The position numbers and the translations under genes were made by a program. Below the pieces are notes generated by a model that was not told the origin of the DNA, ran no database searches, and was given only the letters and a program-made list of their open reading frames with translations. A stretch of DNA of 64,000 nucleotides from Rebecca billardiae RCC1528 (lineage: Eukaryota > Protista > Haptophyta): positions 2,170,001-2,234,000 of the forward strand of contig OZ251224.1 of the NCBI GenBank assembly GCA_965240325.2. Reading direction: 5' to 3'. Of the stretch, positions 22,972 to 52,184 are shown piece after piece (within the stretch, counting starts at the first letter, position 1; the number at the start of each line of letters is the position of its first letter).

Positions 22972-24804
22972 TCAGAACGGCGACTGGCAGAGCGGGCACG
23001 TGCTCTTCTGCGACGAGTTGAACCACTTGTACAGGCACGGCGAGTGGAACTTGTTGTTGCACGTCTTGCACGACAGGCTCGGCAGCTGGCGCGTGACGCC
23101 GTGCACGATCACGTAGCAGATCGGGCACTCCTCGACCCCCTTGAAGAGCCCGTCCACGTGCTCGCGCCACAGCAGCAGCGCGTCGAGCAGCGAGCCGTTC
23201 TGCGAGTGGAGCAGCGTGGAGATGGCGCGCTGCCACCGCCGCCACCGCCCCTCGCTCACGCCCACCCGCCGAGTGCACTCGAGCTCAGGCACGCGGATCG
23301 GGTGGCTGGGAGAGAGCCGCAGCCGCACCGCCGTCTCCGTGTCCTCGCACGCATACGACGCGCTCACTTCGCGCGCGGCGCGCGAGGTGCGAATGGTGAA
23401 GTCGTCGGTTGTCTCGTCTGCGCGGCAGCGGCGGCGCGGGCGCGGGGGGCGCGAGGGAGGGCGCGCGGCCGCGTCAGCGGTGCCGCCGCGCGCGCCGCCA
23501 ACGCCGCGACGCCGACGGTGCGTGCGCGAGCGCGCGCGGCGCGGGCACACGCGCCGAGCAGCCTGCGAGCGAGCGAGCGCGCATGCACGCGGCCGCGGAG
23601 CAACGCGCACACCGGCCCTGTCGATGGCGTCGAGCTCCGCGGCGATGAGCACGGCGCTCGCGCGGGTCGAGAGCCACCGCTCGACAGCTGCCGCCTCGGC
23701 GCGACTCGCCGCGTCCGCCCACCACTGGCGCAGCAGCGCGGGCAGCGCGGCGCTCGCCTGGAGCAGCGCAGCCTCGCACACAGCCGTGTGCGCGTCAGCG
23801 TCCGCGTCCGCGTCCGCGCCTGCGCCGCACGCGCCGCCGGCGGAGGGCGGCGGGTGCGCGAGGGCGTCGAGCACGGTGCGCTGTAGGGGCGGCAGCGCGG
23901 AGGCGGCTGTCGCGCCAAGCCGCTCACTCGGCGGAAGCGCGCGCGCGAGCGCGGAGGCGAACTCGAAGAAGGGCTGACGCCGTGGGCCTCCGCTGCCGCC
24001 GCTGCCGCCGCCGCCACCGCCGCCGCCGGCGCCGCCGCCGCTGCCGCTCCCGAGTCGGCCGTGCACCAGCCAGAGCACGAGCCGCGCGCGCGTCGGGCTG
24101 TCCACACGTGAGGCGATCAGGATCACAAGCGCCCACGTGCAGATCGTGCCCACAGCTGGGTGTTGGCGCGCGGGCGGCGCGCGGGCGGCGTCGGCGGCGG
24201 GCGGCAGGCAGGCTGCCTCGAGCGCGCAGACAAGGGCGGGCGGCACGAACGCGGGCGGCCCCACGTCCGCGTCGGCGGCGTCGGCGTCGGCCGCCGCCTC
24301 GGCATCTGCAGCCGCCCCGCCTGCGGCGCGGCCGCGGCGCATCAGCTCGGTCGCGGGCGGCGCGCTCAGTGCGCGGCTCACGAGTGCGAGCACCGCGCGG
24401 AGCAGGGGCGTGCGCGCGCCGCGCGCGGCAGCGTCGCCGCCCGCGGCTCGCGCGCCCTGCCCGCCGCCGCGCTCGCCGCCGCCGCCGTCGTCGTCGTCGG
24501 TGGCGGCGTCGTCGCCCTCGTCGTGGGCAGCTCCGGCGCGCGGCTCTCCCACGCGCGCGCCCTCCGCGCCCTCCGCGCCGCCCGCGAGCAGAGCGCACAG
24601 CTCACACACACCCTCCCACCGCTCCGCAAGCAGCCGCTCGGGCGCGCTGGCCGCGAGGGCGGAGAGATGCCACGGGCTGAGGGCCGGGTGAGTGGCGCTG
24701 CTGGCGGCCGCGGCGCGCGTGCGCAGCGCGCGCGCGGAGAGAACGGCGCTGTCGAGCAGCGCGCGCCAGCACTCGAGCCGCGCAGCAGCGAGCGCCTCCG
24801 CAGG

Positions 24805-24841
<37 letters not shown>

Positions 24842-27800
24842 TCGCCGCCGCCGCCGTCAGCGGTGGCCGCGGACGGCAGGGCTGTGCACGCGGCCACCGC
24901 CGCGCGCGCCGCCGCGCGCCAGAGCGGCGCGCGCTGCGGCTGGCCGGCACTCAGCCGCAGCCAGCGCGCGCACGCCTCCGCGATGGCGTGCAGCGCCCGG
25001 CCATCGACAGCGCAACCGCCACCCTCGGCCGCCGCGTGCCCCCGCAGGGCGGCGCAGGCGAGCTCGCACGCCGCGATCGCGCTCGCGTCCTCGTCAGCGG
25101 TCGGCGCGGGGGCCGCGCCCTCCTCCGCGCCCGCGCCGCGCGCCTCGGCGGGGCCCTCGGCCGCGGCGCGTGTGTGCGGCAGCAGAGGCGCGCGCCCTGC
25201 GCACAGCAGGTGCACGAGCATACCGCCCTCGGCGCGCGACGGCGGCGCGTGCGCGCCGCGCGAGGCCGGTTCATAAAGGCACGAGAGCGCTCGCGCGGCC
25301 GCCGCACGCTCGGGCGCGCCGAGCCCCGGCGCGGAGAGCGCACGCGCGCACGCCATCGCGAGCTGCGCGCACGCGCCGCCGCGCTCCGCCATGCGCCACT
25401 GCGCCGCCACCGCGCGCTCCGCCGCCTCCGCCTCCAGAGCGACTCCGGGCCCACCGCCGTCGCCGCCGCCTCCGCCGCTGCCGCTGGCCTCCGCCGCTGC
25501 CTCCGCGCGCGCCTCCGCCTCGCCAGCCGCGCCGCCCGCGCCGGCGGCGGCGCGCGCCCGCGCCACGGCCTCCAGGGCAGTCCACGTGTCCCGGGCTGCC
25601 GCGCGCCCGCCGCCCGCAGCGGCGGCCGCGCCGTCCGCCGCCGCGAGCCACGCTGCCGGCGTGGTCGGGAGCGCGGCACACGCCGCGTCGGCAAGCGCTC
25701 GGCTCACGCGCACGCCGCCGCCGCGCCGCGCCGCGCGCAGCAGGGCGGCGAGGGCGAGGGCCGAGAGTGCTGAGCCCGCGTCGGCCGCGGCGACCGCCTC
25801 GGCCGTGGCGACGGCGGCGGCTTCCAGTAGCGCGCGCGCCGCCTCCGCCGAAGCGGCCTCCGCGCCGTCCGCCGCGGCGTCGCGCACGGCCGCCCCACGC
25901 GCGACGCGAGCCACCGCGCGCAGGCAGTGGCGCGCATCCGCCGCGGCGGCCGCGGCCGTGGCGGCGGCGCCAGCCTCAGCGGGACTCGCCGCGGTCGCGC
26001 GCGGCGCCTCTGAGTCCGGGCCGCCCGCCGACGCCGCGGGCGGCAGCGCCGCGTGAGGCCTGTGCGCGGCCATGCGCGCGAGGGCGCGCGCGAGCGCAAC
26101 GCCCGCGCGCTGCCCCTCTGCGCGGCCGCTCTCGGCTCGCGGGCTCAGCACCTGGAGCACGATCCCTCGGCGCCAGCCCAGTGACGGGTGTTCGCCCGCC
26201 GCGCGCAGGCAGGAGCACAGCGACGCCGCGCGCGCGTCCGCGCCGCCCGGCGCGTCCCACGCAGCGGCGGCGGCGTCAGCGGCGGCGTCGGCGTGCGCGG
26301 CGCCGAGGAGTGCGCACCGCGCGACCGAGTTGAGTGCCTCGTCGGCGCCGCCATCGCCGCCGCCGAGTGTCGCGCTCTCGACGGCGAGCTCCGCGGCGGC
26401 GTCAGCCCACGCGCTCGCGCGGCCGTGCGGCGCCCGCGTGCCACTGTCGTCTCCGCCGCCGACCGTGGCATACGCGCCGCCGGACGCGAGGGCATGCAGC
26501 GCGGCCGCCATCGTGCCGGCGAGGGCGCGCGCCGCGGCCGCGCCGGCGGCGGCCGCGTGCGCGCGCAGCGCCGCGCCACATGCGCCGCCCGCCGAGCCGC
26601 CCGCCTCCGCGCCGAGCGCGGCCGCCAGCTGGTCAAGCGACGGCGGCGGCGCGGCGCCGGCGGCGCCAACCGCCGCGGCGAGCACGGCCGCGGCCGCGGC
26701 GGAGGAGGGCGGTGCGGCGCCTGCGCAGAACGGCGAGCGTGGCAGGCAGCGCGCACGCAGCGCCCACACCGCGAGCGCGGCGTGGGCGCCTGGCGCTGCG
26801 GAGCACAGCTGCTCGGAGCCGAGGGCAGCGGCGCACAGTCGGCCGAGAGACGGCGCGTGCGCCGCGCTCGCGCCGCAGAGCACCGCCTCCACGCCCGCGC
26901 ACAGCCGGCGCGTCACGCCGCCCACGCTCGCGGCGGGCAGGCACGGAGGCCCGCTACTGAGGCCGCCGCCGCCTCCGAGACTCAGCAAGCAGCTTAGCAC
27001 GGCTGCGGCCTCCTGCGCGGCGCGCGCGCTCGCGCGCGGCAGAGGCACGCACACCGGCGGCGGCGCGGCGCCGCGCGCGGCCGGCGGCGAAGGCGGCAGC
27101 GGCTGCGCCGGGCACGCGGCCTCGGCCGCGCCTGCGCCCAGCGCCACCAGTCCGGAGAGCGCCACACCCTCCGGGCTCGGCCGCTGGGTGGCGGCGGCGA
27201 CAGCGGCGGCGGCCGTCGCGCCGCCCTGCGCTGCGTCGGCGCTGGGGTGGGGCGCGCAGGCGGCATCCGCGCTGGCGCCGGCGTCGGCCGCGCTGGCGCC
27301 ACGGCCGGCGCGCGGCCGCGCGCTTCCGCCGCGCAGTAGCCCTGCCGCCGCGCACGTCTCGAGCAGCGCGCGAGCGGCGGCGAGCAGAGCGGCGCTGGGC
27401 TGCGGGGGCGCGGTCGGATCGGCCGGCGGCGCGGAGACGCGCACGAGGATCAGCACGCGCGGCACGGCCGCCCCGCCGGGCCCGGCGGCGTGCGAGCACT
27501 CCGCGTCGCAGCGCAGCCGCACACAGCGCGCCGCCGCGCCCCCCGCCGCGCCGCCGCCGCCGCCGCCCAGCTCACCCAGGGCGGCATATGTGAGCTGCGC
27601 GAGCGCGTGCGCGTGCGCGCCGGCCACGCCGGCAGCGGTGGCGGCGTCCGCGCCAGCGCAGAGCGCGCGCGCGAGCAGCGCCCACAGCGCGCGCTCCGAG
27701 GCGTCCGGCGGCGCGCCGGCCGCGCGCGCCTCGCGCCGCGCCGCCGCGGCGGGCAGCCACTGGCGCCGCGCGCGCGCGGCGAGGGCCAAGGCTGCGGCGC

Positions 27801-28624
27801 CCGCCGCGCCGCCGGCGCCCGCCGCGCCGCCGGCCCTCATCGGCAGGAGTCGGGCGCGCACGCGCGTCGCGGCCGTGGGCTGCAGCCTGAGCAGCAGCGC
27901 CGGCGCCGGACGCCCGCAGTCCAGGCCCAGGCCGTCGGCGCCGAGCGCCGCGAGCAGCGTGCACGCGGTGCGCGCGCCGAGCGCGCGCGCGCGCTCGAGC
28001 TCGGCCGCGCCGCCTGAGGCAGCAGCTGCTGCCGAGTGCGCGCTGAGCGTGGCCAGGGCCGCGGCGGTGTCGAAGCAGCGGCGCGCGACGGCGGCGGCGG
28101 CGTCCGCGTGCCGCGTCGCGCGCGCGCGGCCCGCGTCGTCGAGCCGCGAGCCGGAGGCCGACGCCCGCGCCGCCCGAGCCAGCGTCACAAGCACGGCGCA
28201 CGCGCGCGCCGCCCGCGCCTCCGCGTCCGCACTTGACTCCAGCGAAGCGGAGGGTGCGCGGCGCGCGGCGTCGGCGGCGCTAAACGTCGGCGCGGTCGGG
28301 CGCAGGGCGTGCTCGCTCACGTCCGCCACGCGGGCCCACCACGCGCCCAGCGCCGCCTCCACGCCCTCGGAGCAGCACAGCGCCGCGATGGTCGACTCGA
28401 GCACCGCGAGCGCCGGCGCGCCAACCGCGGCCGGAGCGACCGGCGCGCGCGCCGCTCGGTGCGTGCCGCGCGCGGGGGCACGCTGCCACAACCCGTCGCA
28501 CGGTGGCGGGAGGCAGTCGGCGGGAGCCGCGCCCGGCGCGTCGGCGCGGCCCCCAGGCGCCACGCCGCCACCTTCGGCCGCGCTCGACGAGGCGCTCGGT
28601 GCGCGGCGGACAGCAGGCAAAGCC

Positions 28625-28664
<40 letters not shown>

Positions 28665-30039
28665 TGCCGCCGCCGCCGGCTCCCGCCCCGGTTGGGCGAA
28701 GGCCGCTGCCACCGACCCATCGGCTCAGCACGGCGTCGAGCAGGACCTGCTCGAGCAGCGCGGCCTGGAAGGCCTCGCGCGCGCCGCTCGGCTCGCTCGG
28801 CGCGCGACGGAGCAGAGCGTACCGCACGCACTCGGCGAGGGCGCTCACCACAGAGCTGCCGCCTCCGCCACCGCCGCCGCCGCCGCCGCCGCCACCCGTG
28901 CCACCGCCGCCGCCGCCGCCGCTGCCGGCACCGTTCTCCCACAGTGTCGTCAGGAGCTCGACCTCGAGCCTGGCGAGTGGCGCCGCGCCATCGCTTGTGG
29001 GCAGAAGGCTCAGCAGCGGCAGCAGCGCCGCGTACGTCGCGGGCGCCACCGCGCCGACCACTGCGCCCGCGCCGGCGCCCGCGCGGCGCGGGGCCGCGCC
29101 GAGTTGCGCCAACACTGCGTGCTCCACCGCGGTCGCTGTGAGGCCGCCGCCGCCGTCGGAGGCGGGGCGCCACATGGCGGGGCGCGAGAGCGACGCGAGC
29201 GTCATGTCCCACAGCGCCGGCAGCACGAACGCGTCGCGCTCGCGCCCGAGCGCGCGCACGATCGCCGCGCCGAGCTCTCTCGCACGCGCGTCGGCGAGCG
29301 ACGGTGCGCGCGCAGCGCACGCGGCGGCGAGCTGGCAGGCGGCTCGGCGCACGTGCGGCGCGCGCGCGCGCTCGGCGAGCGCCCACACGGCGCCGTGGTC
29401 GAGGATGGGCGCGGCGTCCTCCTCGAGCGCGCGCGCCGCCGCGTCCGAGCCCTCGCTGCCACGCACGCGCGCGATCTCCGCGGTGGCGGTCGCGAGCGCG
29501 CCCAGCCCCGACGCTAGCGTGCGCACAGCCGCCTCCTCCGCCTCCGCGTCCTTCGCCGCGGCCTTGAGGTAGGGCGGCGCGGCGGCGAGCACGGACGCGG
29601 TGATCTTGGCGAAGAGCTCGCGCTGGCAGAACACCAGCGCGTCCGCGCGCTTCGCGGCGTTCGGAATCGCCGCCTCCCACGCGCTGAGCGCCGCGGCGGC
29701 AACGTCAGCCGCGGGGTCGTGCAGTGCGCACTGCCACGGCGCGGCGAGCGCGCGCAGGTGCGGCGCGAGCCGGCGGCCCAGCGCGGCGGCGAGCACGCCG
29801 AGCAGCACGCTCGCCTGCTCGCGCACCTGCCGCGACGTGTCCGCCGAGAGCTTGGCGTACGCCGTCACATAGTGCGGCGCGAGCTGATCGATCTCGTCCG
29901 CTCCGGCGGCACGCGCGTGCGCGAGCAGCTCGGCGAGGCCCTTGAGCCGCGTGGTCGCGTCCTTCTTGGAGAGCTTGCGCAGCATCACGGCCGTCTCCGC
30001 GCCGAGCGACTGCTCCGCCTGCAGCGCCGACTGCAGCAT
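22972..30039 (-). CDS. LTN1: E3 ubiquitin ligase Listerin (ribosome quality control); probable in-frame intron at 23418-23612
   Basis: N-terminal LRKLSKKDATTRLKGL; C-terminal RWD region plus RING GVEECPICY..CKTCNNKFHSPCLYKWF..STCPLCQSPF. Confidence 0.93.
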
Positions 30040-31446: not shown

Positions 31447-32316
31447 TCTTCGTAGCCGGCATGTCGACTTCGCGTAGTCGTGCTCAGCAGCGCGGCTCGG
31501 CTGGTCTCATTTAGTATATATGTATATATATAGTACACAGCTCGGCCATCATCGGCCGCCGCACCGACGCAGCCTTCGTCATGACAGTTCATTAGAGTAC
31601 ATAGTTAATCGTCGTAGTTCAAACTCAACTACTACCAGTTGAGTAGGCTGCGACGATGACGAATCTCGAGTGTCGAGTCTGAGGCGAGAGTCACAGTCTG
31701 AATGAGCCGAGCGACGACGGAGACTCGGCCGAGAGTCAGAGTGGCAGCGCCGACGGGTGTCGCCGGTGTCGGTACTCGGGTCGCGCCTATCCGCGATCGG
31801 CATAGGCCTCGCGGCATCATCGGATCAGGGGCCAGGCATCATCAGCCGCATCATCGATCGCTGATATAATGGTGACGATAGATGTAAGATGACGATGTCC
31901 GTGACGCCAGCAGAGTTACAGCAGACAATGCTTGTCAGCTTGTCCGGGCCAGCCGCCAGGTTGACGCCCGCAAGGCGCAACTCTTGACGACGCTGCTGAG
32001 TAGTGAGTGGCACTGTCTGACTCAGTAGTCAGTGCTGCGGGCTTACACCTAGGTAGACGGCAGCACGAGTCGGCCGAGTCGCAGCACGCATAGCCGTGGC
32101 AAGGGCCGTGCCGTGGCCCGTTCTAAGGCCGTTGTCTTCTTAGTGGGCAGGCGGGGCGCCTATTTTTTCTCGCGAATAACACCCAGAGCGGAACGTGCTC
32201 GAAGCTTCATCACGCCCCAGCGCCCCGCCGCCGGGCCGAGGAGCGAGCACGCCAGCGAGATTTCTTTTGCCATCATCGCTGGGCGCCGAAGCCGACGCAC
32301 GACACACACCACGACG

Positions 32317-32883
32317 ATGATGCGGCTCACCTTCATCGCGTTCGTCACGCTCGCGGTCGCAGGGCTCGAGGCAGCTTCAGCGATGCGTGTGCACGTGGCT
32401 CGTGCCACGCCGACAGTCGCGTGCCGAAGAGTGTCCACCGCGTCGGCGATGATGGCCGCTCCGGCGCGCTGGCCTGAGATCATCCGTGGCTACGTCGCCG
32501 CCAAGTTTGCGACGGTCGACGCGGACAACAGCGGTGAGGTGGACCGCTCGGAGCTGGCGGAGATGTACCGCATGCTGATGCCCGATGCCACCGACGCCGA
32601 GCGCACGAGCGCGCTCGACGACTTCTTCAAGGAGTTCGACGCGGACAAGAGCGGCGACATTGATCAGGAAGAGTTCCTCGTGGCGGTCATGTCGAACAAG
32701 CTGCTCAACTCGAACATGCGCCTGAAGGAGCAGGTGTACGAAGACGTGCTGAAGACATTCGACGCCTCGGGCAAGAAGCTCATCTCCGACTCCGCCTTCG
32801 ACGCGCTCGAGGCGCAGCTCGACTGGGAGGGCTCGAACCTGCCCCAGCAGCTCGGCAAGCTGGCCAAGGCGTTTGCTGGCTGA
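32317..32883 (+). CDS. Two-EF-hand protein with a bipartite plastid-type presequence and a PGRL1-like C-terminal motif
   Basis: EF loops DADNSGEVDRSE and DADKSGDIDQEE; signal MMRLTFIAFVTLAVAG followed by an R/A/T/S-rich transit-like region; GKKLISDSAFDALEAQLDWEGS. Confidence 0.88.
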   Translation: MMRLTFIAFVTLAVAGLEAASAMRVHVARATPTVACRRVSTASAMMAAPARWPEIIRGYVAAKFATVDADNSGEVDRSELAEMYRMLMPDATDAERTSALDDFFKEFDADKSGDIDQEEFLVAVMSNKLLNSNMRLKEQVYEDVLKTFDASGKKLISDSAFDALEAQLDWEGSNLPQQLGKLAKAFAG

Positions 32884-33212
32884 GCCGGAGAGCGCCAGGC
32901 AAAGTTGCAGGCCGGGCGGTCGCTCGCGCGCGCGGAGCCAGCGACGCGGCTGCTCACGTTCGGCCGCTGTTCAATCCTGCCTCTGCGCGCGGTGATGCGC
33001 GAGCGATGTGGTCCACGGGCAGGCCTCCGCCGCCCGACACGAAGTATTACGTACAGAACTTGGCTCTAATACTATGATAATCACGACTGTCGACTCAATT
33101 ACTCACTAGTCATCACTACTCAGACTCAGTGACCTGACCCTGATTGATCGATGTATAGATCTATATTCGACGATACATCTTCGCCATCGGACATCGACTG
33201 GATAATCCTCAC

Positions 33213-36200
33213 TCAGACCTCACGGCTGACGCTGCTGCTGGCGGCAGCCGCGTCGCCGTGAGAAGTCGTGCCGCCGCGGCGGTTGCCCTCCGACGCTGCA
33301 CTGCCGGCTGGCTGAGTCTGCCCGCCCGACGGCGGGGCACCAGTCGGCAAAGCCTGCTCCCAGCGGCTCTTGGCGCGCGGCACCATGGGTGACGTGCCGC
33401 GCGCCATTCTGCCCTTGGAATTCGTGCGCTGCGCGATCTGCAGCGGCGCCTCGAAGACGAGCGTGAGGGCCTTGGGCGCAGGGCTTCCGTGAGAGCGCGT
33501 CGCGCGCAGCCGTGGAGGTGGCGACTGCACGGTCGGCCGGGCGCGGGGCGACGCGTGCCCGTTGCCCCGCGCACCCTCGTCGCTGCGGCCGCTCTCGCGA
33601 GCACGGCCGCCGGTGCCGCCGCTCTCGCGCTTGGCGCGCGGGGAGCCGGCTGCGCCGGCACGCTCGCCGAAGGCGTTGCTCGTCCGCCACGCGGCCGGCG
33701 GGACCACAGGCCAGAGCGGCATGTACCGCCTGTACCCGCCGTCGTCGCCCACCTCCGGCAACGAGCTCGCCCGCACGCCCAGCGACGGCGGGCGCATGAC
33801 CGCGCCGCCGCCCGCGGGCATCGGCGTCGGCCGGAGCATCGGCGCGGCTTCGCCCCGCTCCGCGTCGCCTTGCTCGGCGGCGGATGCGGACGCGCCCGCG
33901 CCCGCGCGCGCGCCCAAGGCGGAGAGCGACTGCACGGCGTCGACGGACGAGCGCAGCCTGTCGCCCAGCCCACCGAGCTGCAGATCCGCCCACTCCCACT
34001 CCCACTCGAGCCATGGCAGCCGCGCGAGCAGGCCGGAGCCGACGCGCGCGAGCCGCGACTGCGGCGCCCTGCGCTCGGGCGGGAAGACGTACCCGCCGTG
34101 CGCGCGGCGTGCGCGCGCGAGCATGATGCAGAACATGGTGAACGAGCAGTACCCCTCGCACTTGAGCGCATCGGCCGCGAGCGCCTCCGTCCCCGCCGCG
34201 CCCAGGTCGAGCGGCGACGGCACCGCCGTCGCCGTCTTGCGCACGAGGGCTGCGAGCGTCTCGATCGCGGCGGTGCCAACGAGGTGGCGGCTCCGGTCGC
34301 GCGAGCGGCTGCGGCGGAGCGCGGCGTCGAAGACGGCGCGCGCGCCCGCGGCGAGGTCGAGCGCGTCGAGCACCGCCGCCGCGCGCGCGTGGCTCGTGTT
34401 CGCGTGCTCGGCCACCTCCGCCTCATGCGCTTCGAGCGTGGGCGCGCCGCCGCCGAGCCGACGGCGCGCCTCGATGGAAAGCGAGGCGTCAAAGATGTAC
34501 GCGCGCTGGCGCAGGTGGCCGTGCTCCGGGTCTCGCCACGCGATCCACGCGTTGAACGAGCCGGTGGCCACGCGGTCGATCAGCACGGCCACCGCGTGGA
34601 TCGGCCGGTACAGCAGCACGCTCGGCACCGCCAGCACGAGCCCGGCGACGCAGCCGAGCGCGCCGCCCCAGCGCGCCCAGTCGTCCGGCACGCGGAAGAC
34701 GTCGAGGATCGCGAGGACGAGCTCGAAGAGGAAGCCGACGACGCCGGCGAGCAGGCCGGCGAGCACGCCGCTCAGCCGCGCGATGCCCCAGCCGCGCGTG
34801 CGGTGCGGCTTGATCGTCCGGCGCCACGAGCTGAAGGCGCCCCACGCCGTCTGCTGCCGAGTGCTCACAGAGCGTCGCAGCGGCGCGTTGCGCATGATAG
34901 CGACGACCTCGGCGCTCACCTTGAGCTGCACGCCGCGCACGCTGTCGGACATGCGGAAGCGCGAGAGGCGCAGCTCAGGCTGGTCCAGCAGCAGGCTCAC
35001 GTCGCACAGCATCTTCTGCCGCGGGAGGCAGCGCTCAAAGTGGCGCACCGCCGTGCCCACGCCGTCCTCCGCGGCCATCCGCTCGGCGAGCTCGCGCGCG
35101 CGCGCCTGCACGCCGCGCTCGCGCAGCACGCCGAACTTGTGCGCGAGCGCGGGCGCGGTGAGCTGGCCGATGGGGCACGGCTCCGGCCCGACGCCCGCCC
35201 GGCGCACCATCTCGCCCCAGAAGAACTGGTCGCCGAAGAACGGGCAGATCATCGTCGGCTTGCCGTACCGCAGGCCGGCGGCGGTCGTGCCCGCGCCGCC
35301 GTGGTGCACGACCGCCGCGACCCTTGGCAGGAGCCAGTCGTGCGCGCACGGGCCGAGGTCGAAGCACAGCCCGCCGCTGGCCTCGGCCGTGCGCAGCTTG
35401 GACCACGGCGCCTGCACGAGCACGCGCGTCTTGCTCCGCCTCGCCGCCTCGACGATCGTACCGGCGAGCGCCGTCGGGTCATCGATCACCATCGAGCCAA
35501 AGCCGACAAAGATCGGCGGCTTGCCCGCGCCCAGGAAGGCGTCGAGTCGGCGCTGCTCGGCGGGGTCGAGGTTGCTGCCGGGCGCGCCGCCGTCGGCTCG
35601 CGCGGGCGACGCGAACGCGCCGACCACCTCGACGTGCTCGCCCGCCCAGTCCTCGGGCTTGGGGACGAACGACGGCGACCACATGAAGCTGAAAGGCACG
35701 CGGAAGCGGTGCAGCAGCAGCCCGACAAACGTGCCGAGCTGGAGCGCGGGGAGGCGGAGCACCTTGGTGCGCCACGCGTTGATCATCGCGCGGTTCGACA
35801 CCCACATCGCCTCCTCGACGATCGCGTAGCTGTGCAGGTTCACCTCGCCGCTCGTCGTGTCGTTGCGCAGGCCAGACATCGGGTGCGGGAACGCCTTGGT
35901 CGGGAGCCACGGCTGCGGGAACATCATGTGCAGCGGCACGCCGAGGGCCTCGGCGACGTGGACGTGGCCGAAGCACACGGGGTTGGCGATGATCGCGTCG
36001 GCGACGAACGGGCGCGCGTCGAAGTCGAACGGGTCCTTCTCCGTCACGGCCGGCCAGAGCGAGTGCACGATCTCGCGCAGCATCTCGACCTTGCTCAGCC
36101 GGAAGCGCAGGGCCTCGCCGATGAGCGTCCCGCCACTCTCGACCATCCAGCGCGAGAGCTTCCGAGGGTCCCCGGCGAGCGGGTAGTGCTCGACCCCGTG

Positions 36201-36440
36201 GCTCAGCACCAGGTGCCTATGCGCCGTGTGCGTGGCCACACGCACGCGGTGCCCGCGCTCGGCCAGCTTGAGCGCGAGCGAGATGAACGGCAGGATGTCG
36301 CCGTGCGTGCCGACGACGAGGATCGCGATGCAGAGCGGCGGCAGCTCGAAAGGCACGTGCTCGGACGCCGCCCAGTCCGCCGGCGGCCGCGACGCCGGCG
36401 CCGCCTCGTTTGAGGCGCGCGTCGCCGACTCCGCCAGCAT
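33213..36440 (-). CDS. Sterol 3-beta-glucosyltransferase (GT1, UGT80/ATG26-like) with a long C-terminal extension
   Basis: VGTHGDILPF, DAIIANP, PIFVGFGSM, HDWLLP, VVHHGGAGTTAAGL and PFFGDQFFWG. Confidence 0.93.
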   Translation of the reverse strand: MLAESATRASNEAAPASRPPADWAASEHVPFELPPLCIAILVVGTHGDILPFISLALKLAERGHRVRVATHTAHRHLVLSHGVEHYPLAGDPRKLSRWMVESGGTLIGEALRFRLSKVEMLREIVHSLWPAVTEKDPFDFDARPFVADAIIANPVCFGHVHVAEALGVPLHMMFPQPWLPTKAFPHPMSGLRNDTTSGEVNLHSYAIVEEAMWVSNRAMINAWRTKVLRLPALQLGTFVGLLLHRFRVPFSFMWSPSFVPKPEDWAGEHVEVVGAFASPARADGGAPGSNLDPAEQRRLDAFLGAGKPPIFVGFGSMVIDDPTALAGTIVEAARRSKTRVLVQAPWSKLRTAEASGGLCFDLGPCAHDWLLPRVAAVVHHGGAGTTAAGLRYGKPTMICPFFGDQFFWGEMVRRAGVGPEPCPIGQLTAPALAHKFGVLRERGVQARARELAERMAAEDGVGTAVRHFERCLPRQKMLCDVSLLLDQPELRLSRFRMSDSVRGVQLKVSAEVVAIMRNAPLRRSVSTRQQTAWGAFSSWRRTIKPHRTRGWGIARLSGVLAGLLAGVVGFLFELVLAILDVFRVPDDWARWGGALGCVAGLVLAVPSVLLYRPIHAVAVLIDRVATGSFNAWIAWRDPEHGHLRQRAYIFDASLSIEARRRLGGGAPTLEAHEAEVAEHANTSHARAAAVLDALDLAAGARAVFDAALRRSRSRDRSRHLVGTAAIETLAALVRKTATAVPSPLDLGAAGTEALAADALKCEGYCSFTMFCIMLARARRAHGGYVFPPERRAPQSRLARVGSGLLARLPWLEWEWEWADLQLGGLGDRLRSSVDAVQSLSALGARAGAGASASAAEQGDAERGEAAPMLRPTPMPAGGGAVMRPPSLGVRASSLPEVGDDGGYRRYMPLWPVVPPAAWRTSNAFGERAGAAGSPRAKRESGGTGGRARESGRSDEGARGNGHASPRARPTVQSPPPRLRATRSHGSPAPKALTLVFEAPLQIAQRTNSKGRMARGTSPMVPRAKSRWEQALPTGAPPSGGQTQPAGSAASEGNRRGGTTSHGDAAAASSSVSREV

Positions 36441-36888
36441 GGCGGGACTACCCGTTGGCTTGAACAGTGAGGTTCGAAAGCGAAGCACCGAGAATTCGGC
36501 GGTAATACCCTCATGGTCGCAACTCAATTGCGATTTACCGCTTGCAAGTTGCAACGGGTTGATTCAACACGATTCAGCTACTGACCACTATAGATTTTAC
36601 CTGCGCATCATCGACCAAACGATGCAAATCAGCTACCCACGAGCTCCAATATCGTCGCACGAATGATTGTGCGCACTCCTCTCCTCCGGAAAATGGCAGC
36701 AAATCGAAGCACACGCGCGACATCATAGCGAGTCGCGCGACACGGAGTTGCTCATGAAACGATGAATGCTGGTGCGACGAGTTGACAGTCACGGAATTGG
36801 CAGTGGGGTCACTCGGGTCGGGCGCAGTCGATCGCGCATCTCAGGCGGTCGGCGCCGCGGCGTGCGAGGACGCCCGGTTGATCGCCGC

Positions 36889-47531: not shown

Positions 47532-50500
47532 TCAAACAGGAGTGTCGGCGTCGCCGCTGCTCGTGCCATTATTCTGCCGCGCACCAAGCGCCGAATCCTG
47601 CCCGGCGTCTGCCGCGCCAGGGTCGCCCCCGGCGCCCTCGTGCCCGTCGTCGGGCTGCTCGCCGGTGACGCCGCCCCGCGGCGGCGAGCATTGCCACCAC
47701 GTGGCCGAGCACGGCGCGTCCACGCCCACCGTGCACACCGACAGCTCGCCCTTGAAGTACGGGCACGAGCTCACGGGGAAGCTCCCTCTGTACACCGTCG
47801 CCGCCTCCCAGCCCGCGCAGCACGGCGCAGCCGAGCAGCCGAGTGGGCAGGGCGGCGAGGGCGGCGAGGGCGGCGGCGAAGGGGGCGCGAGCGGCGAGGG
47901 CGGCGGCGGCGGGGCGGGCGGCGCCGACGGCGGCGCCGACGGCGGCGGCGGAAGCGCCGGCGGCTGCGTCTCGAGCGCGCAGCCGAGCACCTCGAGCGCG
48001 CGCACCGTCAGGTGTCGGCGCCTCGGCAGCCGCAGCGCGCGCAGTCGCACGGCGTCGACGACGACGTGGCCGTTGGAGTCGATGGGCGGCGCGTCGGCGC
48101 TCCCGGCGGGCGCGCCCGGCGCGGGCGTCCCGAGCGCGCCGCCGCCGAGCGCGTGCGTCTCACGCCCCCAGCTCGAGTGCGACGCGTGCGAGACCAGGGG
48201 GACCCAGCGCGCGCGCGAACCGCCCAGCCGGCCGTCGATAGCGTACTGCGCGCCCGATGAGCCGCCGCCCCACTCGACCGCGACGGCGATGAGCAGGGAG
48301 GTCTGCCCGAGCTCGACGGTGAGCGCGGCGTGCCAGTCGTCCTGCGCCGAGACCCACTCCGTGCGCGCGTCACCATCCACCGCGTGCGCCGCGCTGCGCG
48401 CGCTCTCGCCCGCGGCCGAGCTCGGCACGGCCGCCGCCGCCGCGTCGCGAGCGCTGCCAGAGCTCACGGTGCGGCCTCTCGCGAGGTCGAGCTCGGGCGA
48501 GCACAGCGGCGGCGGCGGCGGCGGCGCGGGCGGCGCGGGCGGCGCGGGCGGGCGGGCGGGCGCGGGCGGCGGCGACGGGCGCAGCTGCGCCGCAATCCGC
48601 GCCGACGCCGATGCGCGCCCCGCCGCCTCCACGCGCGTGCGGTGCCACGGCGCGCACAGCCCGGCCCAGGGGTCGTACTCCGTCGCGACGCACGCGCCGT
48701 CCGCGCGGCGGAGCGCGCCGCCCGCGCTGAGGCCGCCGGCAGCGGAGGCGCAGCGCGCGTCGCACGTCGAGTGCGTGGCGATGAACGCGTCGGGCCGGTA
48801 GTACGCGTAGTACGCCGCCGTCCCCGCCCCGCCGCCCGAGCCCGAGGCCGTCGCGGCTCGATCGCGCGCGCCGGCAAGCCGCCACGCTCGCTCGGGCGGC
48901 GGCACCTCCGACTCTCGGCTCAGGGAGTAACAGTCGTAACCGTTGACGCGCGCGACGGCCTGCGGCGGGACGCGCCACAGCTCGCACGCGCCGCCCGCGC
49001 TCACCTCGATCCCCGCGCAGCCCGACGCGCCGAGGCAGCGCCGCGCGCACTCGTCCACGCCGCCGGTCGCGTGGTAGGACGCGAGCCGCAGCCTCTTGCC
49101 GTCGTCCGTCATGCCGGCGCCGCGGCAGGCGGATGCGCCGTGCACCGCGTCCGCCGTCGGCCGGCTGAAGACGTACGCGACGCGCGGCTCGCGCGCCGCG
49201 ATGGCCGACGAGGCGCGGTGCTCGGCCGACGCGCTCGACCCGTCCTCGGCGCCGCCGCCGTGCATCAGCGCGCGCACCAGCTGCAGGCACTCCGCCATGG
49301 TCGCGTCGTCCCGAGCGGAGAGCGCGGCCGCGCGCGCGGCGTCGACCGCGTCCGTGCCAGGCGTCTTGTGCCGCGCGTAGTGCTGGATGAGGCCGACGCC
49401 ACAGCGCAGCCCGAGCGCCGCCGTGTGCACGTACGGCCCGAGCGAGGGCAGCAGCGACAGCAGGTCCAGCCGGATCCGGGCGGAGCGTAGCAGCGCCTGC
49501 AGCGCGCAGCCGGGCGGCGGGCGCGTGCGCATGTCGCCAACGTCCGCCTCCGCGGCCGCATCCACCTCCGCGCCGCTCGCGCCGCGGACGAGCAGGTCAG
49601 CGCCGGCGTTGAGGCTGTCCGCGAAGGCGACGAGCCCGGCCGACGCTCCCGGCGTGCCGCCGCTCGTCGCGTCCTCGTGCGGCACGCTCTGGCCGCCGCC
49701 AGCCGCCGCCGCCGTGCGCCCGTCTGCCGAGCGCGCAGCCGAGCCTTCGGCGTGTGCAGACGAGTCGCCGCCGCCGCGCGACGGCAGCAGGCGCTCAAGT
49801 CCTAGCCCTTCGAGCGGCGCGAAGAGCGAGAAGGGGATGGAGGCCGTCGAGCCGGCCGGGCCGAAACTGAGCTCGAGGGGCTCGACGGACGCCGTGCCGA
49901 TGCAGCCACCGTCTCGATCCTCGTCGCCGTCATCGCCGCCGCCGGCGCGGCCGCCGCTTCCGCCGACGGGCGCGCCCGCGCGATCGGCGCCTGAGCCGCT
50001 CGAGGAGGGCAGGGCCGCCGTGTGCATCCCCACCGAGGCGATTGGGGCGGCGCCGGCGGCGGAGGACGCGTTGGACGCACCGGTGCTGCGCTGGGTGGTG
50101 TCCTTGAGGAACGCGGCCAGCCGCGCGTCCAGCGTCACCGTAGACGAGCCCTCGCCCTGTCCGGAGCCTGCCGCCGAGCCGGCGGCCGCGGCCGCGCCGT
50201 CGTCCGCGCCCGCGTCGGGCGCGCGGGTCGCGCAGAGCTGCAGCGCAAATGCGGGCAGCGAGGCGCGCAGCCGCAGGCGCGAGCGCGGCATCGCGACCTT
50301 CGCGACCGCCGAGAGCCGCGCCGCGTGCTTGCTCATCGCGAGGCCCTCCATCGAGAAGCTGGGCGCGGGCGGCGGCGGCAGCGCGGGCGGCGGCGGCGGG
50401 ACGGGCTGCGGCGTCTCGAGCCCTCCGGCGGCGCCGCCACCGTCGGCAGACGACGCGCCCGCGCCGCCGTGGGCTCGGCCGCGCGTGCGCTCGAAGGCGT

Positions 50501-52184
50501 CGAAGGCGGCGTCGATCGCCTCGTCCCCGGCGGGCGCCGCCGAGCGCTCGGCGCACAGCAGGCACCTCTTCAGCCGCGCGCGCCGCGCGCGCACGGCGCT
50601 GAGCGCGTCCGGCTGCAACGGGATCGTCCGCTCGACGTCAAACTCTGTCGGCCGGCCCAGGAGTACGTGTGAGGCGGCGCGCAGCTCGAAGTGGACGGCG
50701 GTGCGCTCGAACATGGCGTGCAGGGCTGCGGGGAGCTCGGAGCTGCTCGCGAGGCTCGAGAGCACCGCCTCCAGCGCCTCCGTGCCCACGCGCCGCGAAG
50801 CCGCGCCGCCCAGCACGACGGCTCGCATCCGGACTTCATACAGCGCGCGCCCAGGACTCAGCCGCGCCGGGGCCGTTGTGAGCGCCCGCTGCGAGATCGG
50901 CCGGACCGGCACGCCCTCGGCAGCGGGCCAGAGCCGCCGGGCGCTGAGCATCTCGACGCGCACGATCGGCTCGCCCGCGCCGCTCGGCGCCACTGCGCCG
51001 CCGCCGCCGCCGCCGCGCGCGCCGTGCTCGGCGCCCCGACCCGCCTGGTCGGCCGCCGCTGGCGCGCGCGGCACGGGCGCTGTCGCGGACGCGCCGCCGT
51101 CGACGCTCAGCAGGCTGATGCTCAGCTGTGTGAGCTCGAGCGAGAACCACGCCGGGTTGGCGACGTCGAGCGTCAGGGTCATCTCGGGCGAGATGACCAC
51201 GTCCTCCTCCCCGTCGCGCGCCCGCGGCTGCCGCCGCGCGCGCTCGGCGCCCGCGCGCGCCGCGCGCGCCGGCAAGCACAGGCTGTGCACGTCGACTGCG
51301 ACCAGCCTGATGTCCGTGCAGCCGACGCGCGCGGCGCCGAGGCCCACGAGCGCGGCGCCGACGACGGCGAGGAGGAGGAGCACGCACATGAGCGCGAGCA
51401 CGCGCACGCACGTGCGTCGCCGCGCCGAGCCGCTCTGCGCGCCAAGCCGGTCGAGCTCGCGGTCGAGGCCGCCCGCCTCTGGGTCGAGGCCGGGCGCGCG
51501 CCGCGCCGGCCACCAGGTCGCGCCCGGAGCGCCGCCGTGTGCGACGTGCTCCGAACGGCTCTGCTTCTGTTCCGAGGATAGCAGCGAGGCCGTGCCGGCC
51601 ACCTCCTTGCGCTGCGCCGCTGGCTCGCCCTGCGAGACGCGCGATGCCGCGGCGGCTGCGCGCGGCGAATCCTCATCCGCGCTCGTGTCAAAGCGCACCG
51701 CGGGTGACCCCAGGATGGTGGGCGCGTCTCCCCTGAGCTCTGCGTGGTGCGGGACGGCGCCTGCGATGTCGTGGTCCCCCTTGAGCTCCGAGTACAGCGG
51801 CGGCACCGGCGGTACGTCCTCCTCGTCCGCCTCGGCCGATTCCTTGAGCTCGGCGTCCGGGATGACGCCGGCCCACGCGTCGGAGGGCATCCGCACGCGG
51901 CGCGGCGGGACGACGTGCACGGGCTGCGCCTGCTCCGCCTGCCCCGTGGCGTGCGTCGGCTCCATGCTCGCCGAGGAGAAGGCACTCACACTCCGGCGGA
52001 TGGCGCTCAGGCGTTGCTGCTCAGCGCCATCGTCTAGTCGGGGCTCCCGCGTCAGACCCGCGACCGAGACCGTGGCCGGTAGACTCAGTTTCGCGCGCGC
52101 CGGAGGCCCGCTCGGCGATGGAGCAAGCGAAGCGGTGTTGGGCGCGCTTGTTTTGCGAGCGGCGCCAGTGGCCACGCCACGCAT
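47532..52184 (-). CDS. Large type II membrane protein with LEA_2-like, PAN/apple-like and F5/8 type C (discoidin/CBM32-like) domains and Pro-rich linkers
   Basis: TM VLALMCVLLLLAVVGAALV; LTLDVANPAWFSLEL; ECARRCLGASGCAGIEV..CELW; DLARGRTVSS..AVDGDARTEWVS..LTVELG; PPSPPP linkers. Confidence 0.75.
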   Translation of the reverse strand: MRGVATGAARKTSAPNTASLAPSPSGPPARAKLSLPATVSVAGLTREPRLDDGAEQQRLSAIRRSVSAFSSASMEPTHATGQAEQAQPVHVVPPRRVRMPSDAWAGVIPDAELKESAEADEEDVPPVPPLYSELKGDHDIAGAVPHHAELRGDAPTILGSPAVRFDTSADEDSPRAAAAASRVSQGEPAAQRKEVAGTASLLSSEQKQSRSEHVAHGGAPGATWWPARRAPGLDPEAGGLDRELDRLGAQSGSARRRTCVRVLALMCVLLLLAVVGAALVGLGAARVGCTDIRLVAVDVHSLCLPARAARAGAERARRQPRARDGEEDVVISPEMTLTLDVANPAWFSLELTQLSISLLSVDGGASATAPVPRAPAAADQAGRGAEHGARGGGGGGAVAPSGAGEPIVRVEMLSARRLWPAAEGVPVRPISQRALTTAPARLSPGRALYEVRMRAVVLGGAASRRVGTEALEAVLSSLASSSELPAALHAMFERTAVHFELRAASHVLLGRPTEFDVERTIPLQPDALSAVRARRARLKRCLLCAERSAAPAGDEAIDAAFDAFERTRGRAHGGAGASSADGGGAAGGLETPQPVPPPPPALPPPPAPSFSMEGLAMSKHAARLSAVAKVAMPRSRLRLRASLPAFALQLCATRAPDAGADDGAAAAAGSAAGSGQGEGSSTVTLDARLAAFLKDTTQRSTGASNASSAAGAAPIASVGMHTAALPSSSGSGADRAGAPVGGSGGRAGGGDDGDEDRDGGCIGTASVEPLELSFGPAGSTASIPFSLFAPLEGLGLERLLPSRGGGDSSAHAEGSAARSADGRTAAAAGGGQSVPHEDATSGGTPGASAGLVAFADSLNAGADLLVRGASGAEVDAAAEADVGDMRTRPPPGCALQALLRSARIRLDLLSLLPSLGPYVHTAALGLRCGVGLIQHYARHKTPGTDAVDAARAAALSARDDATMAECLQLVRALMHGGGAEDGSSASAEHRASSAIAAREPRVAYVFSRPTADAVHGASACRGAGMTDDGKRLRLASYHATGGVDECARRCLGASGCAGIEVSAGGACELWRVPPQAVARVNGYDCYSLSRESEVPPPERAWRLAGARDRAATASGSGGGAGTAAYYAYYRPDAFIATHSTCDARCASAAGGLSAGGALRRADGACVATEYDPWAGLCAPWHRTRVEAAGRASASARIAAQLRPSPPPAPARPPAPPAPPAPPPPPPLCSPELDLARGRTVSSGSARDAAAAAVPSSAAGESARSAAHAVDGDARTEWVSAQDDWHAALTVELGQTSLLIAVAVEWGGGSSGAQYAIDGRLGGSRARWVPLVSHASHSSWGRETHALGGGALGTPAPGAPAGSADAPPIDSNGHVVVDAVRLRALRLPRRRHLTVRALEVLGCALETQPPALPPPPSAPPSAPPAPPPPPSPLAPPSPPPSPPSPPCPLGCSAAPCCAGWEAATVYRGSFPVSSCPYFKGELSVCTVGVDAPCSATWWQCSPPRGGVTGEQPDDGHEGAGGDPGAADAGQDSALGARQNNGTSSGDADTPV

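Follow-up and report, generated by a model that had tools for sequence, protein, structure and literature searches.

It has long been an open question how cyclic electron flow is switched on, and the role of PGRL1 (PGR5-like photosynthetic phenotype 1) itself is disputed. To our knowledge, almost nothing is known about this switching in lineages other than the green one. Terashima et al. reportedly described in 2012 that in Chlamydomonas Ca2+ regulates PGRL1-linked cyclic electron flow via CAS, ANR1, and PGRL1. The CAS/ANR1/PGRL1 complex is known as the case in which a separate Ca2+-binding protein mediates the action of Ca2+ on PGRL1-linked cyclic flow. CAS resides in the thylakoid membrane, lacks EF-hands, and, as far as we know, is unrelated in sequence to EF-hand proteins of the type analyzed here. 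PGRL1 has two transmembrane helices and six conserved cysteines, i.e. two N-terminal ones and four in a pair of C-terminal CxxC motifs at a distance of 28 residues (PMC13181399). The N-domain cysteines serve thioredoxin m regulation and dimerization, whereas PGR5 is stabilized and, according to modeling, bound via the C-terminal zinc domain and not via the N-terminal repeats (PMC13181399). Chlamydomonas calredoxin (CRX), a stromal sensor-responder, joins four EF-hands to a thioredoxin domain (PMC4911631). The death-specific proteins (DSP) of diatoms and haptophytes are about 200 aa long and possess two EF-hands and a signal peptide; TpDSP1 resides in the plastid, and cyclic electron flow rises when it is overexpressed (PMC10888605, PMC11663583). 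By definition, a DSP carries a signal peptide with or without a transmembrane segment and a C-terminal EF-hand pair (PMC10888605).

The window analyzed here is a 64,000-nucleotide (64-kb) stretch of DNA from Rebecca billardiae RCC1528. Its positions 32317-32883 on the plus strand form an intact intronless ORF of 188 aa plus stop, as evident from the ORF list and the translation; the encoded protein was named P0001. The in-frame ATG nearest the 5' end of the ORF is that at 32317. An in-frame extension reaches upstream to 32113, where the only start codon is GTG. Among the eight orthologues with which the coding sequence (32317..32883, +) is collinear over its full length are an MMETSP transcript and a Diacronema lutheri gene model. 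Two sibling-run contigs, L022 (32033-33053) and L023 (32072-33047), were 100% identical to and collinear with the window, and their ends nearly coincide. They are consistent with being transcripts of the P0001 gene (the library type is not given) and would define a probable intronless mRNA spanning 32033..33053 (+), with a 5' UTR of ~285 nt and a 3' UTR of ~170 nt. RNA sequencing runs were sought for expression of the gene, and none was listed. SIP1 and PIH1_CS, which neighbor the D. lutheri orthologue, are not adjacent to P0001 in the window, and synteny was uninformative. P0001 consists of an N-terminal hydrophobic signal, an acid-free stretch rich in R, A, S, T, and P, two EF-hand loops, and a 43-aa block at aa 134-176. 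The original prediction of an EF-hand protein with a PGRL1-like block at this locus was confirmed. P0001 proved to be a small soluble protein in which a bipartite-looking presequence is followed by a canonical EF-hand pair and a single PGRL1-type repeat.

The EF-hand pair occupies aa 55-125 (32479..32691, +), with Ca2+ loops at aa 68-79 (32518-32553) and aa 108-119 (32638-32673), as seen by Pfam, in the AF2 model, and in structure matches. An EF-hand pair was taken as paired helix-loop-helix elements with 12-residue loops that bear oxygen ligands at positions 1, 3, 5, 9, and 12 and Gly at position 6. Over aa 55-125, PF13499 scored 44.6 bits (cutoff 30) and PF00036 scored 43.6 bits in two stretches; PF13405 and PF13202 were likewise above their cutoffs. 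Both loops carry D1, D3, S5, G6, D9, and E12, and these residues are invariant in six orthologues. Thus, the two canonical EF-hands that had been predicted are present with every ligand position in both loops. P0001 belongs to the EF-hand family (PF13499/PF00036), and it is predicted to bind Ca2+. The AF2 model reached a pLDDT of 82-92 over the pair. VIA-align searches with this model matched CIB, CBL, calcineurin B, and troponin C over aa 50-129 with Z values of 10-12, and nothing was aligned outside the EF-hand pair. A PF23564 tag on P0001, considered as a PGRL1 domain, turned out to be EF-hand_FSTL1, a faint EF-hand match.

The comparison with PGRL1 relied on a reference set of proteins that were called PGRL1 from their architecture and cysteine spacing according to the published fingerprint and from their likeness to plant PGRL1; no named Arabidopsis or Chlamydomonas PGRL1 sequence is in the set. 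The reference proteins have two hydrophobic helices and an N-domain cysteine ~83 residues before the first CxxC, and in P0029 and P0030 the distance between the starts of the two CxxC motifs is exactly 28 residues. The published CxxC cysteines are C212/C215 and C240/C243 in Arabidopsis and C256/C259 and C284/C287 in Chlamydomonas (PMC13181399). Because helices, cysteine positions, and CxxC spacing fit the published fingerprint, the set was treated as PGRL1-type. A word-index search with the PGRL1 part of the fusion relative P0009 and cluster look-ups returned unnamed algal relatives and no PGRL1-named protein. In the atlas, the nearest neighbors of this part were unlabeled Streptophyta and Chlorophyta clusters with 211-216 shared features, consistent with PGRL1. 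PDB sequence searches with the P0001 C terminus, the PGRL1 part, and the N-domain profile gave no significant match, and there was no solved PGRL1 among the matches. Foldseek with the PGRL1 N-domain model gave nothing with E <1; LigA chains were the most frequent among the weak structural matches, with domain Ia appearing in local matches only. The corresponding Pfam family of NAD+-dependent DNA ligase domain Ia (PF22745, Nlig-Ia, cutoff 27) was matched by the PGRL1-type relatives P0010 (46.9 bits) and P0011 (38.2 bits), with P0012 below cutoff. It was not matched by the P0001 family: up to E 10, nothing was found in P0001, five orthologues, or the isolated C terminus.

C-terminal to the EF-hands, P0001 continues with a conserved linker, SNKLLNSN (aa 126-133; 32692..32715, +), which is nearly invariant in the family and has a counterpart in EF-hand::PGRL1 proteins. 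It is followed by the PGRL1-type N-terminal repeat 1, a helix-loop-helix ending in LDWEGS (aa 134-176; 32716..32844, +), which was delimited by HMM, hhalign, and predicted helices; the block LKEQVY...LDWEGS itself lies at aa 136-173 (nt 32722-32835). The helices predicted at aa 136-146 and aa 158-171 correspond to the first two helices in the model of the PGRL1 N-domain. The check proposed in the original prediction, here a search with an HMM of seven EF-less PGRL1-type N-domains, gave a significant match: positions 7-49 of the HMM aligned to aa 134-176 with 31.1 bits as compared with 14.8 bits for the best of 20,000 shuffles, and all eight family members scored between 19.5 and 31.1 bits. In hhalign, the block matched PGRL1-type N-domains with probabilities of 96.3% (E 2e-9) and 97.5% (E 5.8e-12), and as a negative control it was compared with the family's own EF-hand pair, yielding 0.16%. 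A search of 1.84e9 proteins with the C-terminal profile returned the family's own orthologues and PGRL1-type proteins only, among them an EF-hand::PGRL1 protein (E 3.5e-7) and a PGRL1-type protein of Heterosigma (E 4.9e-4). tblastn of the pelagophyte protein P0029 against the window gave E 5e-7. A word-index search with the C-terminal region alone yielded eight candidates and no new relatives. The pattern shared by repeat 1 sequences is K-E-x-[IV]-x-x-D-x-[LI]-x-x-[FY]-...-G-...-L-...-L-x-x-x-L-x-W-x-G-S. Its K-E, D, G, L, L, and W-x-G-S positions are kept in P0001 and are invariant across all PGRL1-type proteins compared. The similarity is far beyond chance and indicates that aa 134-176 are homologous to repeat 1 of the N-terminal stromal domain in PGRL1-type proteins, so that the PGRL1-like character noticed for the C-terminal block holds. 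Because the acidic residues S-D-x-E-F-D of the repeat are mostly replaced by T-P-S-A-F-S in the orthologues, a binding function shared with PGRL1 may have changed.

P0001 itself, as judged from its sequence, is not a PGRL1. Of the two N-domain repeats of PGRL1, a thylakoid protein of PGR5-dependent cyclic electron flow and PSI photoprotection, it has repeat 1, with a significant match; it lacks the second repeat, the transmembrane helices, the six cysteines, and the zinc-binding CxxC pair. What is left of repeat 2 might be a remnant of its first helix. The C-terminal helix of P0001 (aa 177-188 plus stop; 32845..32883, +) was placed by MAFFT on the F/Y-L-x-A-x-x-x-F/Y helix opening repeat 2; a helix is predicted at aa 177-187, but the segment is weakly conserved (39%) and lies outside the HMM alignment. 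A hydropathy scan showed no transmembrane helix beyond the signal peptide, whereas the reference proteins showed segments of transmembrane strength in the expected region. No CxxC is present in P0001; the sole cysteine, C36, is situated in the presequence, and none of the six conserved PGRL1 cysteines was found. Hydropathy and cysteine count thus agree with the predicted absence of PGRL1's transmembrane helices and CxxC motifs. The C-terminal zinc domain, the PGRL1 region modeled to bind PGR5, is absent as well. Because PGR5 has been modeled on this domain and not on the N-terminal repeats, PGR5 is unlikely to be a direct partner of P0001. Conversely, no EF-hand pair like that of P0001 has been described for plant and green algal PGRL1 (PMC13181399).

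Proteins combining both modules were found in other marine algae. EF-hand::PGRL1 fusions of 396 aa (L005:24-1214) and of 385 aa (P0028/P0033) occur in marine metatranscriptomes and Tara metagenome contigs, the latter pair representing a second fusion lineage with the same layout. An atlas look-up of the full fusion gave no usable match. In BLASTP, aa 55-175 of P0001 were collinear with aa 18-142 of P0009 (33% identity, E 2e-21). The fusions share with P0001 the order EF-hand pair, linker, repeat 1, and, unlike P0001, they go on into repeat 2, two transmembrane helices, and CxxC-x(25-26)-CxxC. Of the two EF loops, the second is degenerate in the fusions, whereas P0001 has two canonical loops. 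The presequence of the 396-aa fusion comprises a signal peptide ending CAG|F and then an S/R-rich transit region; the Phe after the signal peptide cut in the fusions is absent in P0001. At the level of sequence, the alignments showed mature P0001 to be collinear over its length with the N terminus of these fusions. Because of this collinearity over the whole mature length, P0001 is assigned to one lineage with them, as a paralogue that lost or never had repeat 2, the membrane helices, and the zinc-binding CxxC domain.

Two of the eight P0001 orthologues carry an organism name, and both are from Pavlovales: D. lutheri KAG8460987.1 and P0027, an MMETSP transcript of Diacronema sp. CCMP2436. The D. 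lutheri protein is labeled in public databases only as EF-hand or hypothetical protein, and the PGRL1 relationship of the family is invisible in current public annotation. Mean pairwise identity is 79% for linker and repeat, the highest of the protein, 69% for the EF-hands, and 38% for the presequence. These values point to purifying selection on the family. A literature search did not reveal a description of a soluble protein of EF-hands plus PGRL1 repeat or of the EF-hand::PGRL1 architecture, and a joint full-text search for PGRL1 and the WEGS motif was likewise negative. The collinearity of mature P0001 with full-length EF-hand::PGRL1 fusions, as apparent from the alignments, is new here.

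Two described architectures come close to that of P0001. Like calredoxin, P0001 joins EF-hands to a photosynthesis-related effector domain, but in calredoxin there are four EF-hands and the effector is a thioredoxin domain (PMC4911631), whereas in P0001 it is a PGRL1-type repeat without catalytic residues. With the DSP proteins it shares the small size, the signal peptide, and two EF-hands. As described, DSP proteins are set apart by C-terminal EF-hands and by a weak reported similarity to PGR5, not PGRL1 (PMC10888605, PMC11663583); in P0001 the EF-hands are central and are followed by a 63-aa non-EF C terminus with the PGRL1-type repeat.

The plastid-type presequence that had been predicted was only partly borne out. 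The hydrophobic N terminus resembles a signal peptide (aa 1-22, ending ASA; 32317..32382, +), with a Kyte-Doolittle 19-residue mean of 1.82 at aa 4-22, and an equivalent start is seen in the orthologues. The following stretch (aa 23-50; 32383..32466, +) resembles a transit peptide, with a conserved RRVS(A/T) motif, no D/E, four K/R, and 68% S/T/A/P/V/G, and this composition is kept in all orthologues. The sequence of aa 1-50 is poorly conserved, whereas the layout of a hydrophobic start followed by an acid-free stretch is common to all eight. The aromatic residue at +1 is missing. Phe follows the signal peptide cut in the EF-hand::PGRL1 fusions and in canonical PGRL1-type proteins; the residue after the predicted cut is Met in P0001 and A, G, or T in the orthologues, sometimes with W one position later. 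Because P0001 lacks the aromatic residue that is usual after the cut in red-lineage plastid proteins, it is probably, but not certainly, chloroplast-directed.

Several other explanations of P0001 were weighed. The C-terminal block might be a degenerate third EF-hand that resembles PGRL1 by chance or convergence. Its F-D-A-S-G-K-K-L-I-S segment is reminiscent of an EF loop that has decayed, the alignments with calmodulin produced by phmmer extend to ~aa 157, and the language-model features of aa 126-188 are nearest to EF-hand clusters, with a weak score of 0.90 and ~100 shared features. However, family members vary at loop position 1 and have Ala at position 12, the matches to structures of four-EF-hand proteins cover aa 50-129 only, and among 1.84e9 proteins the profile found no EF-hand protein besides the family's own orthologues and EF-hand::PGRL1. 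The hhalign probabilities, 0.16% against the family's own EF-hands versus 97.5% against PGRL1-type N-domains, ruled out this very improbable reading. Collinearity with the N terminus of the full-length fusions would also be expected if P0001 were a truncated gene model or pseudogene, i.e. exon 1 of a complete EF-hand::PGRL1 gene, with the transmembrane and CxxC exons missed or recently lost. This is extremely improbable: on its 3' side the gene is followed, from 33213, by a GT28-type glycosyltransferase gene on the opposite strand. The truncated gene was ruled out by the common end of all eight orthologues, by contigs that stop ~170 nt past the stop codon, and by tblastn across the 64 kb, in which no transmembrane or CxxC part was found.

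It is unlikely that P0001 is a secretory or endoplasmic reticulum-resident protein with an ordinary signal peptide and a basic propeptide cut at RR, the mature protein being endomembrane or extracellular. The missing aromatic residue at the predicted +1 and a conserved dibasic RR just upstream of the mature start would fit such a fate, as would a weak Pfam similarity to the secreted SPARC Ca-binding region (23.1 bits, cutoff 22), but the SPARC match is confined to the EF-hands. In addition, the post-signal stretch of every orthologue resembles a transit peptide in that it is free of acidic residues and hydroxylated and basic in character, and the only non-EF-hand relatives are PGRL1-type proteins with plastid presequences and thylakoid protein architecture. 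Possible, yet doubtful in our view, is that P0001 is a relic of an EF-hand::PGRL1 ancestor in which the repeat serves as an intramolecular cap or dimerization hairpin of a stromal Ca2+ buffer or sensor without any role in cyclic flow. The largely substituted acidic positions of the repeat in the orthologues are in line with this, and so is the lack of the cysteines used for thioredoxin m regulation and dimerization of the PGRL1 N-domain (PMC13181399). A mere cap, however, hardly explains why the invariant K-E, D, G, L, L, and W-x-G-S positions are kept, and repeat plus linker are the most conserved part of the protein.

The best explanation of P0001, which we consider about as likely as not, joins the domain content and the membership in the EF-hand::PGRL1 lineage established above with a putative stromal Ca2+ tuning of the PGR5/PGRL1 pathway. 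P0001 would be imported into the plastid stroma, both EF-hands would bind Ca2+, and in response the protein would present or withdraw its single unpaired PGRL1-type repeat. Because repeat 1 would pack on the second repeat in PGRL1, the lone copy would most plausibly dock on the PGRL1 N-domain; alternatively, it might dock on a contact partner of the PGRL1 N-domain at the thylakoid surface. In this way, the PGR5/PGRL1 pathway would be tuned by stromal Ca2+, in trans through P0001 and in cis through the EF-hand::PGRL1 fusions. Against this explanation stand the non-aromatic residue at +1 and the mostly replaced acidic residues of the repeat, and no full-length PGRL1 or PGR5 was found in the 64-kb window. 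A role as Ca2+-regulated adaptor or competitor on cyclic electron flow, as originally proposed and as we infer here, is strengthened by the attachment of the module of EF-hands, linker, and repeat to a complete PGRL1. More tentatively, and as a possibility rather than an expectation, the EF-hand pair plus PGRL1 repeat might form a conserved switch by which Ca2+ controls the PGR5/PGRL1 pathway in algae with red-lineage complex plastids, built into PGRL1 in the fusions or acting in trans as a soluble stromal subunit in Pavlovales, in place of green algal CAS and as a direct Ca2+ route to cyclic flow and PSI photoprotection.

In diatoms, stromal Ca2+ transients under high light have recently been shown, and their targets are largely unidentified (PMC11663583). 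The EF-hand::PGRL1 fusions and soluble P0001 are two clonable candidates for a direct action of Ca2+ on the PGR5/PGRL1 pathway, and P0001 offers a natural probe for binding partners of the PGRL1 N-terminal domain. These architectures point to a possible, hitherto undescribed Ca2+ input into photosynthetic electron flow. If true, stromal Ca2+ transients would be linked directly, at the molecular level, to cyclic electron flow and PSI photoprotection.

The 188-aa window protein, encoded at 32317-32883 on the plus strand (ORF list and translation, with the first in-frame ATG as start), is a member of the EF-hand superfamily. The pair of canonical EF-hands in the original prediction was found at aa 55-125, where four Pfam EF-hand models scored above their curated cutoffs. 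Each loop spans 12 residues (aa 68-79; aa 108-119) and is canonical, and the positions D1, D3, S5, G6, D9, and E12 were invariant among six orthologues. The N-terminus also had the plastid-type appearance ascribed to it. A hydrophobic stretch (aa 1-22) ending in ASA is followed by 28 residues with no Asp or Glu, four Arg, and 68% S/T/A/P/V/G, and this two-part layout was kept in eight of eight orthologues despite a mean pairwise identity of 38%. The predicted absence of transmembrane helices and CxxC motifs held as well: no hydrophobic helix follows the signal peptide, and the single cysteine lies in the presequence. The residue after the predicted signal-peptide cut is Met in the window protein and A, G, or T (in some cases followed by W) in the orthologues, unlike the Phe present there in EF-hand::PGRL1 fusions and canonical PGRL1-type proteins. 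This missing Phe is a weak point of the explanation proposed here. The motif RRV[ST] (RRVSAF in most orthologues; window 32425-32445, aa 37-43) is kept immediately ahead of the mature N-terminus, although the rest of the presequence is poorly conserved, and may serve for processing or phosphorylation.

Residues 126-188 had no Pfam assignment. The precomputed tag PF23564 was discarded as an explanation of the block, this being a faint EF-hand family. A profile (A2) built from the C-termini of six family members was searched against 1.84 billion representative proteins, and just eight were matched at E 0.001: three orthologues, P0009 (an EF-hand::PGRL1 fusion of 344 aa, E 3.5e-7), P0012 from Heterosigma akashiwo (4.9e-4), the larger proteins P0010 and P0011 (E about 2-4e-4), and a repetitive membrane protein, which was discounted. 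P0009, P0010, P0011, and P0012 all harbor tandem repeats of the form ...YY-x-x-G-x-x-x-L-x-D-x-x-F-D-x-L-K-x-x-L-x-W-E/A-G-S. In all but P0012, hydrophobic helices and a pair of CxxC motifs come after the repeats; the C-terminus of P0012 looks like the product of a frame shift. In P0010 (537 aa) and P0011 (554 aa, a EukProt transcript), the N-domain is duplicated, giving four repeats in two units, and the hydrophobic helices C-terminal to them precede CxxC-x-CxxC.

The PGRL1-like block that had been noticed is present at aa 136-173, which together with the features above confirms the original observation in full, and the proposed check with an HMM of PGRL1 N-domains gave a significant match. 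This HMM, for which seven PGRL1-type N-domains lacking EF-hands were the sole input, aligned its positions 7-49 (repeat 1) to aa 134-176 with 31.1 bits; the best of 20,000 composition-matched shuffles reached 14.8 bits, and the eight family members scored 19.5-31.1 bits each. Overhangs in phmmer matches and language-model features hinted that the block might instead be a degenerate third EF-hand. This reading was ruled out by hhalign: the family C-terminal profile matched three canonical N-domains with a probability of 96.3% (E 2e-9) and ten N-domains with 97.5% (E 5.8e-12; 43 gap-free columns), and the control against the family's own EF-hand pair gave 0.16% (E 0.37). Helices were predicted at aa 136-146, 158-171, and 177-187, and four helices form two hairpins in a model of the PGRL1 N-domain (pLDDT 81), so that the predicted secondary structure agrees with assignment to the PGRL1 repeat. 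The window protein thus comprises the first PGRL1 hairpin and may also retain the opening helix of the second, which the HMM alignment does not reach. In the orthologues, the acidic residues at S-D-x-E-F-D in the repeat have for the most part been substituted, which is likewise a weak point. Mean pairwise identity across the family reached 79% in linker plus repeat, 69% in the EF-hand region, and 38% in the presequence, and purifying selection, as shown by this sequence comparison, is strong, with identity highest on linker and repeat. We regard the domain composition and homology of the window protein, as stated here, as very probable.

The reference proteins were assigned to PGRL1 by a published fingerprint of architecture and cysteine spacing rather than through a named PGRL1, a further weak point. 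A word search started from P0009 supplied two further EF-less relatives, the pelagophyte protein P0029 and P0030, and a metagenome scan supplied others (contigs L009-L013 and L018). Two transmembrane domains and six conserved cysteines characterise PGRL1 (PMC13181399): two of the cysteines are N-terminal, and the other four form a C-terminal pair of CxxC motifs (C212/C215 and C240/C243 in Arabidopsis, C256/C259 and C284/C287 in Chlamydomonas). The second N-terminal cysteine stands 89 residues ahead of the first CxxC (PMC13181399). In P0029 (231 and 259) and P0030 (265 and 293), the CxxC motifs are spaced by exactly 28 residues, the same as in Arabidopsis and Chlamydomonas PGRL1. Both proteins have a cysteine 83 residues upstream of the first CxxC, just past repeat 2, with hydrophobic helices in between. 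The Arabidopsis PGRL1A sequence presumably fits the repeat consensus of the reference proteins. Language-model features of the PGRL1 part of P0009 were nearest to unnamed Streptophyta and Chlorophyta clusters (211-216 of 256 shared). Membership of the reference proteins in the PGRL1 family is held with high but not complete confidence.

The repeats of the relatives also match Pfam Nlig-Ia (PF22745), the NAD+-binding domain Ia of bacterial NAD-dependent DNA ligase (LigA). P0010 (46.9 bits) and P0011 pass the cutoff, and the repeats of P0010, P0011, and P0012 retain the signature YY...SD-x-E-[FY]-D-x-L. The window protein itself had no match to Nlig-Ia in the Pfam search, and the PGRL1 N-domain (model m6c844f22e573) gave weak matches to LigA by PDB profile and by Foldseek (E above 0.1). 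The idea was raised that the PGRL1 N-domain might bind a nicotinamide nucleotide.

That the ORF is merely the first exon of a longer PGRL1 gene was ruled out by the following observations. Eight orthologues with 55-66% identity share one C-terminal end point; one is an MMETSP transcript from Diacronema sp. CCMP2436, and another is the Diacronema lutheri gene model KAG8460987.1 (A0A8J6C3Q5), for which the annotation says no more than 'hypothetical protein' or 'EF-hand domain-containing protein'. Two short contigs from sibling runs are 100% identical to and collinear with window 32033-33053 and 32072-33047, and their near-coincident ends are consistent with the pattern expected from a transcript. 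Searches of the 64-kb window by tblastn with four PGRL1-type proteins found no PGRL1-type sequence besides the ORF, and the following gene, a GT28-type glycosyltransferase, lies on the opposite strand. This long ORF (33213-36554, minus strand; 1113 aa, called as a 1075-aa product) carries Pfam Glyco_transf_28 and EryCIII-like_C, is of the sterol/UDP-glycosyltransferase type, and converges on the EF-hand gene with stop codons ~330 nt apart. A divergently transcribed SIP1/gemin2-domain gene lies upstream of the orthologue in D. lutheri (JAGTXO010000029.1) and in a JGI contig; it is absent beside the window gene, and therefore local gene order differs among these Pavlovales. The D. lutheri orthologue helps to place this genome with the Pavlovales haptophytes. 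GC3 of the window ORF is 0.87, similar to that of its relatives. G+C is very high (0.77-0.84 in 2-kb windows) at 24001-30000 and 48001-52000 and 0.53-0.74 elsewhere in the window.

Residues 55-175 of the window protein are collinear with aa 18-142 of P0009 (33% identity, E 2e-21), a span that opens with the first EF-hand, takes in the linker, and closes with repeat 1; the EF part alone gave E 6e-12. The EF-hand pair of P0009 (PF13499, 26.8 bits, under the cutoff of 30) has a canonical first and a degenerate second loop. The 344-aa database entry begins at an internal Met and so has no presequence; the full ORF of 396 aa lies on a polyadenylated transcript contig (L005, 24-1214; also L006, L007, and L008) and starts with a signal peptide ending in CAG|F and an S/R/A-rich stretch, by sequence a classic presequence of red-lineage complex plastids. 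A second fusion lineage (P0028/P0033, 385 aa; contigs L002-L004), located on gene-dense Tara Oceans contigs of 71-73% GC, has the same architecture and presequence, and its PGRL1 part is 54% identical. Both fusions, which stem from marine metatranscriptomes and Tara metagenome contigs (GC3 0.95-0.96), combine presequence, EF-hand pair, two PGRL1 repeats, two TM helices, and two CxxC motifs. A third form of 266 aa (L016, 359-1156, MDTE01010625.1) begins with a hydrophobic anchor, continues with a degenerate EF-hand-like region that aligns collinearly with the window protein, and has two repeats of PGRL1 type, with a score of 80 bits against the canonical HMM; lacking the TM pair and the CxxC domain, it is a second kind of PGRL1-N-domain protein without membrane part. 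Because P0009, P0028/P0033, and L016 all carry the combination, an EF-hand(-like) pair plus PGRL1 N-repeat constitutes an evolutionary unit, which occurs both attached to the membrane part and on its own. Of its versions, the window protein is the shortest and the sole compared form with both Ca2+ loops canonical.

The window protein is not a PGRL1, though it carries a PGRL1-type N-terminal repeat, because three defining PGRL1 features that were tested are absent from it. The available portions of the literature joining PGRL1 and EF-hand describe no fusion or soluble PGRL1-repeat protein, an absence that is not proof, and we take the protein to represent a domain architecture new to both the PGRL1 and the EF-hand family. 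It would be imported into the plastid stroma, where its two EF-hands would bind Ca2+ and thereby alter exposure of the lone PGRL1-type hairpin. Since in PGRL1 the same hairpin pairs with a second one, absent here, the lone hairpin would be free to pair with the PGRL1 N-domain or that domain's partner at the thylakoid surface. The full mechanism, comprising plastid location, Ca2+ sensing, and action on the PGRL1 pathway, is tentative and falls somewhat short of an even chance in our estimate. The PGRL1 N-domain is subject to thioredoxin-m and dimerisation control through cysteines, whereas the window protein is devoid of those cysteines. PGR5 is unlikely to be a direct partner because modelling places it on the zinc domain at the C-terminus of PGRL1 (PMC13181399). 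The CAS/ANR1/PGRL1 complex of Chlamydomonas is the precedent for Ca2+ control of the PGRL1 pathway, and diatom KEA3 and DSP show that red-lineage plastids attach EF-hands to photosynthetic regulators.
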